Sequence record: MT939492.1
Direction: 5' to 3' (one strand)
DNA: 64,000 bases
The notes under the pieces were generated by a model. That model was not told the DNA's origin. It did not search any database and saw only the letters and a list, made by a program, of their open reading frames with translations. The translations under genes and the position numbers were made by a program. The stretch's first letter is position 1. Each line of letters starts with the position of its first letter. Of the stretch, positions 35,606 through 62,820 are shown one piece after another.

Positions 35606-36802
35606 ATGACCAAGCATTACGTTGGAACCAAGATCATTCAGGCCTACCCGTTGGGTCGTGAAGACAAGCCGGGCTATGGCGTTCAGTATCCGGACGGGTA
35701 CAGCTCCTGGTCGCCGAAGGACGTCTTCGAAGAAGCCTATGTCGAAATCGGTGTCATCCCGGCAGGCACTCCGGACTTCGTCCAGCGCCTGGTCGGTGAG
35801 CGCGCTCAGTTGTTCGATCGCTACAACAAGTTGCTGGCCTTCTCCGTCGCTACCAAGCACAACGAAGAGCACGAAGGTCACCAGCAGTTGGAAGGCGACG
35901 AGCTGTCCGACATCGAAGACCAGCTCGAAGCGATGCGCACGTACATGCACGTGCTGGACCAGCGTATCCATCGTCACGGGTTCATTTTCCACGACACCGG
36001 TGTCCTGTTCACGCTCAAGCAGGCTGAAGCCGAGAGCCACGTTCGTACCGAATGGGTCATCGCGCACATCATCGCCAAGTGCGAGAAGGCCGGCGTACTG
36101 CTGGACATCGCCGCGTCCAACACCCTGCCGAGTGAAATCGCTGCTGATATCCAGCGCATCTTTGGGGTGAACAGCAAGGTCAGCTGCCGCTTCGAGAAAG
36201 ACTACTGGACCATCGACGTTGAACTGCTGGAACCGTACCAGAAGTTGGAACATCGCTTCGTCTTCCGTTACCTGGAATGCTACCACCGCGTGGTTGCCAA
36301 GGATATCGGCGAACGACTGGATCGGGCGTTCTGCACGGTACTGAAGGCCGGCAACGCTCCCAACGACGTCGTGTTCATGAGCTACCTGACCGACAACTTC
36401 GACAAGCTGGTATCCGGCAATCTGAACGTATCGGCTAAGGTTGACGGCCGCAGGATCAACGGCGACTGGATCCTCCACGTCCCCTACAGCGATGACCTGC
36501 TCAAGGGCGAGACCTTCCACTACAAATTCAGCCGCTGGAACAACGCCTGGAGCTTCACCAGCGAGAACTCGCGTCAGGATCGCTTCAAGCGCGCACTGGA
36601 TGCTTTGATGCTGTTCCCGCTGAGCGTGGTCACGGCGATCTACAACAAGCTCGATGAGAGCAGTGCTAGTGTCTACGAACACGGCCCGACGCTGCATAGC
36701 GAGCAACGTGGTGCTCGCCTCGTCTTCAAGGATGAAGCTCTGGAGCGACTGCGACAGATGCTCGCCGCTGCTGCTGAGCGTATCGGTGAGGTCAAGGCAT
36801 GA
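35606..36802 (+). CDS. Multidomain phage protein (YVGTK..SWSPK domain + crAss001_48-like helical domain + unknown C-terminal domain)
   Basis: YVGTKIIQAYP...GY.V.YPDGY.SWSPKDVFEEAY, then QRLVGERAQL...KL..F...Q..AM..Y..VL..RI. Confidence 0.6.
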   Translation: MTKHYVGTKIIQAYPLGREDKPGYGVQYPDGYSSWSPKDVFEEAYVEIGVIPAGTPDFVQRLVGERAQLFDRYNKLLAFSVATKHNEEHEGHQQLEGDELSDIEDQLEAMRTYMHVLDQRIHRHGFIFHDTGVLFTLKQAEAESHVRTEWVIAHIIAKCEKAGVLLDIAASNTLPSEIAADIQRIFGVNSKVSCRFEKDYWTIDVELLEPYQKLEHRFVFRYLECYHRVVAKDIGERLDRAFCTVLKAGNAPNDVVFMSYLTDNFDKLVSGNLNVSAKVDGRRINGDWILHVPYSDDLLKGETFHYKFSRWNNAWSFTSENSRQDRFKRALDALMLFPLSVVTAIYNKLDESSASVYEHGPTLHSEQRGARLVFKDEALERLRQMLAAAAERIGEVKA

Positions 36803-37515
36803 GCACGCCTACCGATTACACGCTGCTGGTCTCGTTCCCGGTTCAGGACGAGCTTTTCACGCTGGGCGTTGAAGCTGGCATCTTCTGGCAGCGCCTGTGC
36901 ATGGGCGAGCGCGAGTTCGAATACCTTGCCCACGTCAAGAATGTCGAGTGCTTGGATCGCATGGCTCTGGCGATGGACCTGAAGGTAGAGTTCAAGAGCC
37001 GCGAAGACGATGAGTGGTGTGTACTGCTCATCTCGCCCAAGGTCAGTGAGAAGGAGCGTCCGCGCCTGATGCTGATTCCCGGCGGGATCACGCTGAACAC
37101 CGAGAAGATGGTCGAGGTTACCAAGGTGTTGGGTCGGCACGAATTCTTCCAGCAGATGTCCAAGCTGAAGTTCGCCCCTGACGCCGGCCGGCATGATTTC
37201 AAGAATCTGCCGGACAACGCCCTGGAAACCCTGGCTTCTGTCTTCGACACCAATTCGGTGTTCGTGGTCAACAGCAATGACGACTTCGATCTCGTCCAGG
37301 CCAACATGTACACCTCGCGCCGGATGCTCAATCGTTCGGAAGTGTTCCTCTCGCCAATCTTCCCCAAGTCGAGCAAGGGTGAACCGTACTTCGTCATCAT
37401 CGACGGCCGTAAGGGTCGTGGCGAAGGGCACCATCCGGCCGATGTTATCGACATGCGGATCGAGCATATCCGCAAGACGAACGTGCGTCCGCCGACGTTC
37501 ATCGTGCTGCACTAA
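36799..37515 (+). CDS. Hypothetical protein
   Basis: 238 aa, ATGA overlap. Confidence 0.65.
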   Translation: MSTPTDYTLLVSFPVQDELFTLGVEAGIFWQRLCMGEREFEYLAHVKNVECLDRMALAMDLKVEFKSREDDEWCVLLISPKVSEKERPRLMLIPGGITLNTEKMVEVTKVLGRHEFFQQMSKLKFAPDAGRHDFKNLPDNALETLASVFDTNSVFVVNSNDDFDLVQANMYTSRRMLNRSEVFLSPIFPKSSKGEPYFVIIDGRKGRGEGHHPADVIDMRIEHIRKTNVRPPTFIVLH

Positions 37516-44494: not shown

Positions 44495-44550
44495 AATACC
44501 TGAGGACTTTTCTTTTTTGTCGTCATGCTATGACAATGGGAGGACTCTTT

Positions 44551-45069
44551 ATGGTGACAGCAATTGGAATCGGCGTAAAACTGGGCAAGGCGGTCACCTG
44601 GTTCATCAAGGGTGGCTGGAAGAAGATCCTCGCTCTGGTGATCTTGGCTGCGATCGCCTACGGCATCGTGATGGGGGTCATGCGTGTCTATGACCACATC
44701 TACGACCGTGGCGCGGCAGCTCAGCTCAAACTGGATACGGTGGCAATCACCAAGCTCCAGAAAGACCTGGCCGACAAGACCGAAGACCTGCGCAAGTTCA
44801 AGCAGGAATACGGCGACTGGATCTCGGCCGGGGAGAAGGTCAATGGGGAAGTGGATGTCGGTCAAAAGGAGCTGATGGCAGAACTTCGCCTGAAGCTGTT
44901 GGCATCTGAACAGAAGGTCAAGGAAAAGGAGCAGTTGCTCAATGAAATCCGCAAACAAATCGGCGCGTCTGACGATGTTGCTAGCCCTGGTACTGCTGGC
45001 TTTGCTCGGCTGTACAACCAATCGCTCGAAAAGCCCAAGCCCGCAGCAAAACCTGCCGCAGGTAACTGA
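44551..45069 (+). CDS. Inner-membrane spanin (Rz-like)
   Basis: N-terminal TM followed by coiled-coil heptads; overlaps a lipoprotein gene; RBS GGAGG before ATG 44551. Confidence 0.7.
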   Translation: MVTAIGIGVKLGKAVTWFIKGGWKKILALVILAAIAYGIVMGVMRVYDHIYDRGAAAQLKLDTVAITKLQKDLADKTEDLRKFKQEYGDWISAGEKVNGEVDVGQKELMAELRLKLLASEQKVKEKEQLLNEIRKQIGASDDVASPGTAGFARLYNQSLEKPKPAAKPAAGN

Positions 45070-45313
45070 CGAGATGATGGAAGTGCGTCCCGAACTCCAA
45101 TCGATTCCGGTTGGTGGCAAGGGACGTGAGCCGAAGCTCAGCGAGATCGCCCAGGTGGCGCTCACCAACAACGCTGAAGCCGTGGCGCGCGGCGACATCA
45201 TCGAGGCGTGGCAGTACTGGTACACCAGCAACCGCGCCATCATCGATGCGGCATTCGCCAAGTTTGGCATCAAGCCGCCGGTACTCACTGAAGACAAAGC
45301 AAAGAGCAAGTAA
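44942..45313 (+). CDS. Outer-membrane spanin lipoprotein (Rz1-like)
   Basis: Lipobox LALLGC after a hydrophobic signal; Pro-rich; overlaps the i-spanin gene by 128 nt. Confidence 0.7.
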   Translation: MKSANKSARLTMLLALVLLALLGCTTNRSKSPSPQQNLPQVTDEMMEVRPELQSIPVGGKGREPKLSEIAQVALTNNAEAVARGDIIEAWQYWYTSNRAIIDAAFAKFGIKPPVLTEDKAKSK

Positions 45314-45714
45314 TGAGCGATTTCGAAAACGAGTTCGAGGCCGTAGAGGCCGAAGCTCAGGCACTGGTCAGCAAGCAGGAAATCTTCACCTTCAGTCCTG
45401 CCGAGATCTTTGCCAATACCCGCGAAGCCAAGTACAGCATCGGCGATGATGCCTGGATGGGAATCTTCATGGGCAACGTGAACCCCAAGCCAGAAGACAA
45501 GCCCGACGCAGCAATCCCGGTGGTGATCGTTGGCGTGGTCAATTTCCACAACAGCGTGGCCTACCGTGTCGGTTATCGTGGCGACGACGGCATGATTCGG
45601 TTCGACAACGACCTGATCGACGAAGAGGACATCTACGATGATCCGATCTACCTGGATCGTCCTCGACAGACGCCTGAGCGTGGCAAACGCCCGGCGCTGT
45701 TCATCGTCAAGTGA
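45313..45714 (+). CDS. Hypothetical protein with SspB-like ClpX-binding C-terminal tail
   Basis: Ends DEEDIYDDPIYLDRPRQTPERGKRPALFIVK; compare SspB GGRPALRVVK. Confidence 0.6.
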   Translation: MSDFENEFEAVEAEAQALVSKQEIFTFSPAEIFANTREAKYSIGDDAWMGIFMGNVNPKPEDKPDAAIPVVIVGVVNFHNSVAYRVGYRGDDGMIRFDNDLIDEEDIYDDPIYLDRPRQTPERGKRPALFIVK

Positions 45715-45722
45715 CCAGCTAG

Positions 45723-45751
45723 GCAGGGGGCGAAAGCCTCCTGCTCTATGC
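45723..45751 (+). terminator. Hairpin + TATGC
   Basis: GCAGGGGGC-GAAA-GCCTCCTGC-TC-TATGC. Confidence 0.7.
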
Positions 45752-45819
45752 TGTCAAAAATGAAATCTGGGGTTAGTGCTATGTACTAACCCTTATCCAC
45801 TTTGGAAGAGCAAGTCCAA

Positions 45820-47128: not shown

Positions 47129-47947
47129 ATGACCAGCAACAACATCAAGCCCCACAGTCCCAAGTCGGTTGCCGACGAACTCCTGATCGGTCCCGTGTTC
47201 GACAAGGTCTACGCCATCAACGAACTGGCCGGCAACGCACGTGACCAGGGGCATCGCATCGCCAAGCACCAGATGGATATCATCGATCTGGAAGTGGACG
47301 AGCTGCGCGATGGCATCGCCAACAACGACCTGCACGAAATCATCGACGGCGTCGGTGACGGCCTGTTTACCATCCTCGGCCTGGCTGGCCGCTACGGGTT
47401 CGACGCTGCTGAAGTGCTGCGCCGGGTGAACGAAAGCCAGTTCTCCAAGTTCGACAAGAACATGGACGACCTGCTGGACACCCGTACCAAGTACACCCGC
47501 CTGGGCGTTGAAACCTTCTTCATCAAGAAGGAGTACGAGGGCGAAACCGTCTACGTGACCAAGGTCAGCGAAACCGTCACCGGCACCGACGGCAAGACCT
47601 ACCTGAAGGGCAAGTGGCTGAAGTCGGTCAACTTCCAGGAACCGCGCTTCGATGACATGATCGAACTGATCATCAAGCAGGAACTGAAGCTGCGCTGCTC
47701 TGTGGAACCCACCAGCTCCGCTCCGGTCTCCGAGTGGCCGACCACGCTGAAGTCGTACATGGTCAAGCTGGACGCGGACAAGCAGCGCTACATGCTGCGC
47801 GAAGCCGGCTATTTCCTGGGCGAAGAAGGCGTGATCGTCAGCGACCTGGCCGCATGGGCAGCTGCCGAAGCCGAAGTCAAGGCGAAGGAAGAAGAAAAGC
47901 CCTGGTACGCCGAAAATACCGGACAGTCCGGCGAAAGCCAGGCCTGA
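47129..47947 (+). CDS. MazG/PRA-PH-like nucleoside-triphosphate pyrophosphohydrolase
   Basis: EVDEL...EIIDGVGDGLF.ILG...V..S.FSK acidic helical motif pattern. Confidence 0.7.
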   Translation: MTSNNIKPHSPKSVADELLIGPVFDKVYAINELAGNARDQGHRIAKHQMDIIDLEVDELRDGIANNDLHEIIDGVGDGLFTILGLAGRYGFDAAEVLRRVNESQFSKFDKNMDDLLDTRTKYTRLGVETFFIKKEYEGETVYVTKVSETVTGTDGKTYLKGKWLKSVNFQEPRFDDMIELIIKQELKLRCSVEPTSSAPVSEWPTTLKSYMVKLDADKQRYMLREAGYFLGEEGVIVSDLAAWAAAEAEVKAKEEEKPWYAENTGQSGESQA

Positions 47948-51311: not shown

Positions 51312-51581
51312 ATGGGGATGAACCACAAAGACCCCTTGGGTGATCTCGTGGAACAGCTGCGTAAGTATCAGCAGTCGCCGATCACGGCACTGAAGATGCT
51401 GCAGCCGGAGATCATCTACCTGGCCGAAGAAGTACTTATCGACGGGGAGGGTCAACCCAACCGCGATGCCATCGCAATGCTTCGCAAGCATGGCTTCGAC
51501 GTCGGTCCGCATGCGACCGAAAAAGGTGACTGGCTGCAAGGTGCAATCCAGACTCGTAATGGCTTGATCCTTTTCGGATGA
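51312..51581 (+). CDS. Hypothetical protein
   Basis: 89 aa ORF. Confidence 0.55.
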   Translation: MGMNHKDPLGDLVEQLRKYQQSPITALKMLQPEIIYLAEEVLIDGEGQPNRDAIAMLRKHGFDVGPHATEKGDWLQGAIQTRNGLILFG

Positions 51582-51821: not shown

Positions 51822-52343
51822 ATGGAGAAGTACGTGAACAAGCGCATTGAAACTGAAGTCACTCCCCTCATCGGTACTGCCGGGTTCGTCATCGAGGGTC
51901 TGTACAACTGGATCTTCGCCATGGGTGGCACGCCCCACATCTGCATCATGGCAGACTGGCCCGGTAACCAGCTCCCCAGTACCCTGCCGAAACAGCCGCA
52001 ACGGGTGGATCTCGGTGAGGATGGTGAAACGATCGATCTGCCGGTCATCGTCCTCAACATCGGTCAGCTCGCCACTCGCGGTCTGACGTTCTTCCGTGGC
52101 GAGGATTCGGACAACCCCGCCGATCCGGTAACCCATCTGCTGTTCTCCGGCCGTAGCAAAGGAGATCATTTCGATGGTACGGTCGATGTCAACTCGATCA
52201 TGGCTGTCTTCATGATCGAAGAAGCCGGTCGCGGCATGTCCCTCGGAAACAATCCCGAGCTGAATGACTTCATCAACAGCAAAGGCAAACCCACCCCGCC
52301 GGCCAAGCCATCGGGTAAGCCGACCTTGATGGTCGTCAAATAA
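51822..52343 (+). CDS. sspB: Stringent starvation protein B homologue (ClpXP adaptor)
   Basis: LYNWI..MGGTPHI, IVLNIG..A..GL, FSGR..G....V....I.AVF..E.GRG, and C-terminal KPTLMVVK align with SspB. Confidence 0.85.
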   Translation: MEKYVNKRIETEVTPLIGTAGFVIEGLYNWIFAMGGTPHICIMADWPGNQLPSTLPKQPQRVDLGEDGETIDLPVIVLNIGQLATRGLTFFRGEDSDNPADPVTHLLFSGRSKGDHFDGTVDVNSIMAVFMIEEAGRGMSLGNNPELNDFINSKGKPTPPAKPSGKPTLMVVK

Positions 52344-61922: not shown

Positions 61923-62820
61923 TACCCCAGAACAACCCGCAGCGCCGGTGGCGGAATACGTTCCGCACCTCAGGCTGGTCAAGGCAGTCGAGCAGTTCTC
62001 CGGCAGGGCGCCGTATACGGTCACGGTGGAGGGTGTGAATCCCGATCAGCAGGAAGACCTCGCTTCACTGATCGCCGCCTTCCTGGCCAACACGTTCCCC
62101 AAGAATCGCGTGTTCCTCAAGATGGCAACGCGTCCGAGTTGGTCGGCGTCTGAAGAAGGCGTGCAAGATCTTACCGCTCATCTCGCCGGCGAGGACAATT
62201 GCGGCGGACTCGGCGTCGGCAAAAATCGCACCGCACACGACTTCGACAATATCCTGGTGCGTGACGGACCGGCGGACCACCCCGCGTGGACCATGGACCC
62301 ACCGAGCTACCAGATCCCGGAAAACAGCGCGATGTATCTGGAAGCCGAACGCAAGGTAACTGGACCTTTCCCGTTCCTGTTCCCGACCGAGGCCTTCAGC
62401 TACGTCGGTAAGAAGCTGGCTGTCACGGCAATCGTGCTTCATGTCACTGAATCGGCAGGTGACATGGTAGTTCGTCTGGATAAGCCGGTTATCCTCAGGC
62501 CGAAGAATGCGATGATCGAAGCGGAAGAACAGATCCGCAAGGTTATCCGCAATCGCGAGCAGATGGAAGCCGATCACATCCCGATCGCCGGCGGTGTCCG
62601 TAGTCCTCCTGCGAAGATGCCGGGCCTTACGCTCTTCGGTTCTTCCGAGGATCAGCGCAGGGAGATCGAAGTCGCAGTCCATTTGTCCCTGGTCATCGAC
62701 TGCATCCACCACACGATCGATTATGCCATCACCAACATCCCGCTGCTTCGCGGTAAGCGCAGCAAGGTGGTTCCGTTGGGGTTGGTCATCGACCTCATCG
62801 ACGAACCCGACGTGGAGTAA
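61915..62820 (+). CDS. Hypothetical protein
   Basis: 301 aa from ATG 61915. Confidence 0.6.
   Translation: MDNTPEQPAAPVAEYVPHLRLVKAVEQFSGRAPYTVTVEGVNPDQQEDLASLIAAFLANTFPKNRVFLKMATRPSWSASEEGVQDLTAHLAGEDNCGGLGVGKNRTAHDFDNILVRDGPADHPAWTMDPPSYQIPENSAMYLEAERKVTGPFPFLFPTEAFSYVGKKLAVTAIVLHVTESAGDMVVRLDKPVILRPKNAMIEAEEQIRKVIRNREQMEADHIPIAGGVRSPPAKMPGLTLFGSSEDQRREIEVAVHLSLVIDCIHHTIDYAITNIPLLRGKRSKVVPLGLVIDLIDEPDVE

Follow-up and report, generated by a model that had tools for sequence, protein, structure and literature searches.

Can a phage protein that is not SspB carry the signal by which SspB reaches the protease ClpXP? This question is raised by gp61 (Xoosp14_61) of Xanthomonas phage Xoo-sp14, encoded in the stretch of 64,000 nucleotides analyzed here (the window), which is the first 64 kb of the phage genome (MT939492.1, 232,104 bp); window and record coordinates are the same. 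Xoo-sp14 is a chimallivirus, that is, a nucleus-forming, phiKZ-like jumbo phage, placed beside Xanthomonas phage LucasX (10.1101/2024.03.21.585822; PMC9009655), and an earlier note, made on this DNA from its letters, had rightly taken it for a phiKZ-like phage. The final 10 residues of SspB attach to the zinc-binding domain at the N-terminus of ClpX (PMC3983244; PMC9963277). We found that gp61 ends in a near-copy of this ClpX-binding (XB) tail, which is kept in all the lineages of its family. On our best reading of the sequence, gp61 would be a protein that docks on the N-domain of ClpX, novel both in its putative cargo domain and in the location of its gene, last in the phage lysis cluster.

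An SspB-type tail on a protein unlike SspB

The open reading frame (ORF) of gp61 and its parts, as delineated with AlphaFold2 (AF2) models and an alignment of homologues, are the following (pLDDT, predicted local distance difference test; pI, isoelectric point).

45313 to 45714, + strand: gp61 coding sequence, 133 aa; an ORF annotated "hypothetical protein" in MT939492.1
45313 to 45378, + strand: N-terminal acidic helix, residues 1-22; AF2 secondary structure at low confidence, and alignment
45433 to 45636, + strand: predicted beta-barrel domain, about residues 41-108, with the acidic LIDEEDIY at its end; AF2 and Foldseek
45637 to 45681, + strand: segment predicted to be disordered, residues 109-123, becoming basic and rich in Pro near its end; pLDDT and pI
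45682 to 45711, + strand: SspB-type, XB-like tail GKRPALFIVK at the C-terminus; 7 of 10 residues identical to the tail of chain 8et3_Y

As read from the ORF, the 133-aa chain ends in ...ERGKRPALFIVK, and its C-terminus, ...TPERGKRPALFIVK, is followed by the stop codon. The likeness to the SspB tail with which the earlier note had started was confirmed. In comparison with the tail of E. coli SspB (...ggrpalrvvk; chain 8et3_Y, as given in the output of a PDB search with gp69, the SspB homologue of Xoo-sp14 described below), the 7 identical residues are accompanied by one Val/Ile exchange.

The tail was rare in the phage itself. Six frames of the whole 232-kb genome were scanned locus by locus, yielding 2,946 ORFs, delimited from stop to stop and 40 codons or longer, among which only gp61 and gp69 end in [VI]VK. 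No occurrence of [RK]P.L..[VI]K beyond these two, internal or terminal, was found in the six frames. By chance, 4e-4 such tails would be expected among 251 proteins, given the phage's own amino-acid composition. The "several adaptors" envisaged in the earlier note thus come down to exactly two tailed proteins, and neither of the weaker look-alikes that it listed was given weight, since each sits inside a protein and is missing the motif's terminal part: HLRLVK was located at nt 61966 rather than 61915, within gp86 (residues 7-12), and RPRLMLIPGG at nt 37057 rather than 36799, within gp46 (about residue 87). When eight more loci (12-24 kb, six frames) were scanned, ends of the type L.[VIL][VI][KR] were confined to the gp61 homologue and the SspB homologue, and at the LucasX locus the tail was present on the gp61 homologue only. 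The conserved columns that the tails of the gp61 family, of the phage SspB proteins and of E. coli SspB have in common are an Arg/Lys, a Pro, a Leu, two aliphatic positions and, at the very end, a basic residue. In the single Enterobacterales metagenome-assembled genome obtained from a scan of bacterial contigs, the end of the SspB ORF differed from the tail pattern.

The remainder of gp61 did not resemble any known family. No match was found in Pfam (E ≤ 10) or PHROG, nor in PDB sequence or profile searches. The sole line returned by NCBIfam, a YopJ/YopP acetyltransferase, scored 17.1 bits against a cut-off of 610 and covered 66 residues, and was discarded as noise. A reading of gp61 as another SspB paralogue was likewise rejected, because profile-profile comparison (hhalign) with the phage SspB family gave a probability of only 7%; no SspB match was seen in Pfam or NCBIfam (E ≤ 10). 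By these comparisons, the folded part of gp61 is unrelated to SspB, in line with the earlier note, which had called it a non-SspB protein.

Xoo-sp14 does encode an SspB homologue, about 6 kb further on.

51834 to 52343, + strand: gp69 (Xoosp14_69), divergent SspB homologue; NCBIfam SspB equivalogs, BLASTP and tail

This protein ends in SGKPTLMVVK (nt 52311-52340). It matched the NCBIfam SspB equivalogs (PRK11798) over its full length with an E value of 9e-10, though with a score far below the curated cut-offs; it had no Pfam match, and in BLASTP it matched the PF04386-positive SspB of a related contig (L004) with an E value of 6e-8. Judged by these matches, gp69 is a real, though divergent, SspB homologue. 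In all four lineages of the gp61 family, an SspB homologue is found 2-7 kb downstream of the gp61 homologue, followed by a dCTP deaminase. The SspB homologue of LucasX, LUCX_196 (L016:11989-12555), has no XB-like tail, and the gp61 homologue LUCX_191, 2.2 kb upstream, keeps one. Since in LucasX the tail sits on the gp61 homologue alone, the two proteins are not simply redundant. No tRNA or transfer-messenger RNA (tmRNA) gene was found by ARAGORN in the whole Xoo-sp14 genome, and, with no tmRNA gene in the phage, its SspB homologue would need ssrA-tagged or other substrates from the host.

The AF2 model of gp61 had a mean pLDDT of 55, with a helix at residues 3-21, four strands between residues 46 and 103 in a barrel of pLDDT about 50-70, and disorder over residues 109-133 (pLDDT < 50). 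That of P0013, a longer homologue, had a mean pLDDT of 50 and comprised five helices within residues 2-88 (low confidence), four strands between residues 128 and 177 (barrel pLDDT ~75) and a C-terminal region of pLDDT ~60. The LucasX row was left out of the alignment used for structure prediction and was used for the alignment statistics and the local profile. The small beta-rich domain described in the earlier note and the disordered C-terminus are therefore predicted features, at low to moderate confidence only. When the P0013 model was compared with the PDB by Foldseek, chromo-barrel/Tudor domains (MRG15, MRG2, MSL3, RBBP1 and UHRF1) dominated, with a probability of 0.99, target TM scores of 0.58-0.76, root-mean-square deviations of 3.6-4.1 Å over ~70 columns and E values of at least 0.013; with neither model did the PDB search give a match at E ≤ 0.001. 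The best domain matches were the chromo-barrels of MRG15, MRG2 and MSL3, the model having four strands and moderate confidence in the barrel. It is reasonable, though unproven, to assign the modeled barrel to the Tudor/chromo-barrel type (SH3-like, 'Royal' fold). In BFVD, just two proteins matched significantly, one of 235 aa and one of 133 aa; judging by length, they are presumably the LucasX and Xoo-sp14 members of the family.

Between the barrel and the tail lies a Pro/Arg-rich coil, and the charge changes sharply along the chain: the pI is 4.4 for the whole protein and 12 for residues 116-133. The acidic stretch DLIDEEDIYDD (residues 100-110), which the earlier note had read as a linker, belongs mostly to the last strand and the edge of the folded domain. 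Of the SspB-like layout that it proposed, the XB-type tail following a predicted disordered segment was retained; the linker is short, basic and Pro-rich, not acidic. No membrane segment was predicted in gp61.

The gp61 family and its place behind the spanin genes

A word-based search of 5.8 billion proteins returned the cluster of gp61 itself and nothing else. A full HMMER search added P0013, an alignment-based profile search added P0014, and tblastn of P0013 against GenBank phages added the LucasX protein. Scans of IMG/VR and of metagenomes with the family alignments gave no lineage beyond these. One further candidate from the full search, P0012, a tandem-repeat protein of 1,459 aa matched in 13 stretches, was rejected as a compositional artefact. 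The family, made up of chimallivirus proteins with gp61 as its founding member, consists of four lineages.

Lineage 1: Xoo-sp14 clade, seven variants with 92-99% identity, on 227-234-kb contigs
Lineage 2: P0013, 211 aa, on contigs up to 296 kb
Lineage 3: P0014, 213 aa, 83% identical to P0013
Lineage 4: LUCX_191, 235 aa, from LucasX, a phage in culture, L016:9073-9780

Lineages 2-4 are ~30% identical to gp61 and have an extra N-terminal helical region of ~85 residues, which precedes the part corresponding to the acidic helix. At this low overall identity the tail was retained in 4 of 4 lineages, so that its conservation among homologues, which the earlier note had listed among the points to check and whose lack would have counted against its reading, was established. 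Counted back from the last residue, the tail positions in the aligned family are as follows.

Position -8: Arg, invariant
Position -7: Pro, invariant
Position -5: Leu, invariant
Position -3: Ile or Val
Position -2: Val, invariant
Position -1: Lys in three lineages, Arg in LucasX

Invariant columns made up 4 of 8 in the tail versus 17 of 111 in the remaining alignment (Fisher p = 0.03). Two other stretches, the acidic LIDE.D.Y and RPRQ.P, are common to three lineages; they do not define the family, because LucasX is without them.

Comparison of gp61 with its relatives in the Xoo-sp14 clade showed 32 synonymous and 8-9 non-synonymous codon differences, and the gene is under purifying selection. 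In the last 18 codons, 8 synonymous differences and no non-synonymous one separate gp61 from its homologue in contig L003, and in the last 10 codons differences were synonymous only. Among these relatives, identity amounted to 93-94% for gp61, compared with 60-62% for the SspB homologue, 41-43% for gp62 and 45-85% for most neighbours. Only gp68 (window 51312-51581, 89 aa), directly upstream of the SspB homologue, exceeded gp61 in conservation: with 96-98% identity it is the most conserved protein of the region, and it had no family match.

A conserved link between gp61 and lysis genes, absent from the earlier note, emerged from the following neighbouring features (TM, transmembrane segment).

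44530 to 45069, + strand: gp59, i-spanin-like, with an N-terminal TM and a coiled-coil-type periplasmic part; PHROG Rz-like spanin, E 0.008
44942 to 45313, + strand: o-spanin-like lipoprotein ORF; signal peptide, LLGC lipobox and an Rz-like spanin match in PHROG, E 0.005
45712 to 45756, + strand: RNA hairpin starting from the gp61 stop codon; dG -29.9 kcal/mol, z = -4.7, 0 of 200 shuffles as stable
L004:8829-9155 and L016:7881-8198 (LUCX_189): candidate holins of 105-108 aa with three membrane segments, directly upstream of the i-spanin

In GenBank, gp59 starts at 44551; its TM-like segment spans residues 29-47. The o-spanin-like ORF overlaps the end of gp59, and its stop overlaps the start codon of gp61 (TAATG), gp61 being translationally coupled to it. 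GenBank gp60 (45074-45313) begins at 45074 and omits the upstream in-frame start, together with the signal peptide and the lipobox; the longer ORF looks like an o-spanin. The PHROG Rz-like matches of the spanin-like proteins are weak (E 0.003-0.008); taken with the sequence features listed, gp59 and the 44942-45313 ORF are read as an overlapped i-spanin/o-spanin pair.

In contigs L004 and L007, which are distant, the gene immediately upstream of the gp61 homologue, 8 nt away from it, codes for an i-spanin homologue and has a lipobox ORF embedded in it; almost nothing else is recognisably conserved across 20 kb. The same arrangement directly precedes the gp61 homologue of LucasX. Thus, the gp61 homologue always follows the i-spanin/o-spanin pair, in every lineage. 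The spanin architecture itself varies between lineages, since L004 and LucasX use a separate, embedded lipobox ORF, the counterpart of the C-terminal half of the Xoo-sp14 o-spanin ORF being in the i-spanin frame; all close relatives keep the Xoo-sp14 arrangement. In Xoo-sp14, no holin-like protein was found directly upstream of the spanins, where gp58 (313 aa, no membrane segment) is encoded instead.

The hairpin at 45712-45756 has a GAAA loop and no U-tract, which is why it was missed by a simple terminator scan. It is likely the end of the spanin-gp61 transcription unit, and for the RNA polymerases of the phage itself it may serve as a terminator or to stabilise the RNA. The sigma-70 promoter/terminator scan was uninformative for this type of phage.

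Two further proteins of the window gave signatures. gp63 (window 47129-47947), which, unlike most neighbours, can still be detected in the distant contigs, has a MazG-like nucleotide pyrophosphohydrolase signature (21.5 bits versus a Pfam cut-off of 22). gp45 (window 35606-36802), annotated as hypothetical, matched Pfam PF21825 (crAss001_48-related, labelled 'Sequestin') with an E value of 1e-14.

Weighing a ClpX-docking role

Among known systems, SspB itself, an adaptor that enhances the specificity of ClpXP, is the closest in layout (E. coli; PDB 8ET3 and 1OX9; complex of the tail with the zinc-binding domain 2DS8, cited in PMC12373786). Both proteins comprise a folded domain, a segment that is disordered (by prediction in gp61) and a C-terminal tail of ~10 residues; gp61 differs by its unrelated folded domain, its much shorter, basic linker and the location of its gene in a phage lysis cluster. 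SspB homologues of phages are on record, namely gp18 of Pseudomonas phage pf16 (PMC5587285) and gp039 of the Erwinia chimallivirus RAY, which is cytoplasmic (10.1101/2023.02.24.529968). Like gp61, these proteins and gp69 are presumed to dock on host ClpX; unlike gp61, they are true SspB-domain proteins. The earlier note's statement that the system was not known from such phages is therefore to be split: phage SspB homologues are known, and a non-SspB phage protein with an XB tail was not found described in our literature search, which was not exhaustive and which also yielded no Clp link to a spanin cluster.

Other comparisons bear on what such a protein could do. CLIPPERs, synthetic degraders made of a bait, a linker and an XB sequence (PMC12373786), combine a target-binding part with an XB anchor, as proposed for gp61; they are engineered peptides for which ClpXP-dependent degradation was demonstrated, whereas gp61 is a natural protein with an inferred role. 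In that work, an XB anchor fused to a bait sufficed to bring an untagged native protein to ClpXP, and XB functioned at any position in the chain, XB-eGFP itself being degraded slowly in a ClpXP-dependent manner (PMC12373786). Gp53 of phage SPO1 (PMC6873191) is a phage protein that acts at a host Clp adaptor site and redirects proteolysis, as we propose for gp61, but it does so on the unfoldase ClpC, in a different host phylum, without an XB motif and without sequence relation. RssB and UmuD (PMC7226468; PMC3983244), like gp61, are non-SspB proteins that were proposed to reach the N-domain of ClpX through XB-like sequences. In RssB, the C-terminal motif proved to be buried and without function, a caution that applies to gp61. 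That of UmuD is reportedly internal or N-terminal, a finding ascribed to Neher et al. 2003.

In the mechanism that we propose, gp61 would dock by its tail on host ClpX, and its barrel would hold a cargo protein, tethering it to ClpXP for degradation. Seated on the N-domains, gp61 would also compete with other adaptors and substrates that depend on them. We consider docking of the tail on host ClpX probable, given its likeness to SspB and its conservation; that gp61 is a tethering adaptor whose barrel holds a cargo is a more tentative proposal, to which we give somewhat less credence than its opposite, though more than to any one of the alternatives below. That gp61 binds ClpX, that a cargo exists and what it would be, and that degradation follows are all matters that we infer. 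As gp61 is always last in the holin/spanin cluster, its cargo or its timing would probably be tied to the late, lysis phase.

Several observations weigh against this proposal. Efficient delivery by SspB requires bivalent tethering, and nothing seen in gp61 points to a dimer or to ssrA-tag binding. The gp61 linker is much shorter than that of SspB, the fold support from Foldseek is weak (E ≥ 0.013), the family is small, with four lineages, and the sequence yields no mechanism by which a cytoplasmic, acidic protein would be joined to membrane lysis proteins. Furthermore, both AF2 models draw a short strand inside the tail (residues 128-129 in gp61; residues 208-210 in P0013, where the pLDDT is ~60), for which reason the tail may pack on gp61's own barrel. 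Finally, the C-terminal XB-like motif proposed for RssB turned out to be part of its fold and not to bind the zinc-binding domain (PMC7226468).

The last two points speak for a reading in which the tail is not a ClpX signal at all: its strand would complete the protein's own barrel or bind another partner by beta-augmentation, and the likeness to SspB would be convergent or coincidental. That tail-like strings are not rare in huge collections agrees with this, as seen in a survey of IMG/VR with a DNA pattern (one codon version of R-P-x-L-x-x-V-K-stop), which gave 42 matches versus 28 for the reversed control (1.5-fold). Yet, within a genome or locus the motif is restricted to the SspB homologue and the gp61 family, the gp61 and SspB tails conserve identical columns, and a Pro/Arg-rich coil parts the tail from the barrel. 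We regard a tail that is structural or binds something else as rather unlikely, and this reading owes the weight that we still give it mainly to the finding that the XB-like motif of RssB proved buried and inactive.

If the tail does dock, it could do so without a cargo. gp61 made late with the lysis proteins would then act as a decoy that saturates the N-domains of ClpX, turning off N-domain-dependent degradation (through host SspB and RssB-type adaptors, or of FtsZ-like or phage substrates) or taking over from the phage SspB. The free XB peptide alone inhibits SspB-, lambda O- and FtsZ-dependent degradation (PMC3983244; PMC9963277), and RssB-mediated turnover is blocked by SspB or its tail peptide (PMC7226468). 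The short linker would suit a decoy, as would the situation in LucasX, where a tailless SspB homologue and a tailed gp61 homologue are not simply redundant. However, a decoy would have no need of a barrel kept at 93-94% identity under strong purifying selection, and a monovalent tail is expected to bind weakly. Because the barrel is strongly conserved, a specific partner is favoured, and we consider a pure decoy unlikely. Still less likely, in our view, is that gp61 is itself the substrate: a regulator of the lysis phase, it would be brought to ClpXP by its own tail, and its lifetime would thereby be limited, as by a proteolytic timer. The slow, ClpXP-dependent degradation conferred on eGFP by an XB tail (PMC12373786) would provide for this, and the gene, translationally coupled to the o-spanin ORF, is the last of the lysis cluster in every lineage. 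Against it, we identified no recognisable pore-engaging degron in gp61, a feature not rigorously testable from the sequence here, and gp61 is without a membrane segment with which to meet the holin or the spanins.

Tails beyond the family and what a second route would mean

A general claim on the spread of the tail is unsupported, because the enrichment over the reversed control in the IMG/VR survey was weak. Individual matches were nonetheless observed on other proteins. A 457-aa tyrosine integrase (PF00589, E 4e-19), encoded at L027:1945-3315 (IMG/VR UViG_648276709_000003), ends in ...GGRPTLRVVK, and for this integrase of a prophage a link to ClpX is possible on the strength of its sequence. 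Related viral ORFs of ~110 aa (L034:1004-1336; L043:9540-9869, on the minus strand; L053:40-369) end in SRPRLV.VK after a Pro/Ala/Ser-rich stretch; no Pfam domain was found in any of the three. From their sequences, they may represent another XB-tailed phage family.

The survey hints, and does no more than hint, that the tail may be a portable module. We considered a bolder form of this idea, in which the XB tail is a docking module grafted onto unrelated proteins, through which a lysis-cluster protein of this chimallivirus group makes host ClpXP destroy, or cease to destroy, a lysis-timing factor; taken as a whole, this is improbable in our estimation. If true, it would for the first time tie a holin/spanin cassette to AAA+ proteolysis, and the tail arrangement of LucasX, the tail of the integrase and those of the unannotated ORFs would be parts of one wider phenomenon.

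Little has been mapped of how phages take over host proteolysis: besides a few inhibitors and a single adaptor-like protein for ClpC, there are copies of SspB, noted only in passing. Judging from its tail, gp61 probably represents a second, previously undescribed phage route into this machinery. If a non-SspB protein with a ClpX-docking tail is indeed what it is, the tail would be a transferable module in nature, and the interaction of gp61 with ClpX would offer a small, defined protein-peptide pair for structural work. As gp61 is better conserved than nearly every neighbour and invariably closes the lysis cluster, ClpXP might then also have a role in the late, lysis phase of nucleus-forming phages.

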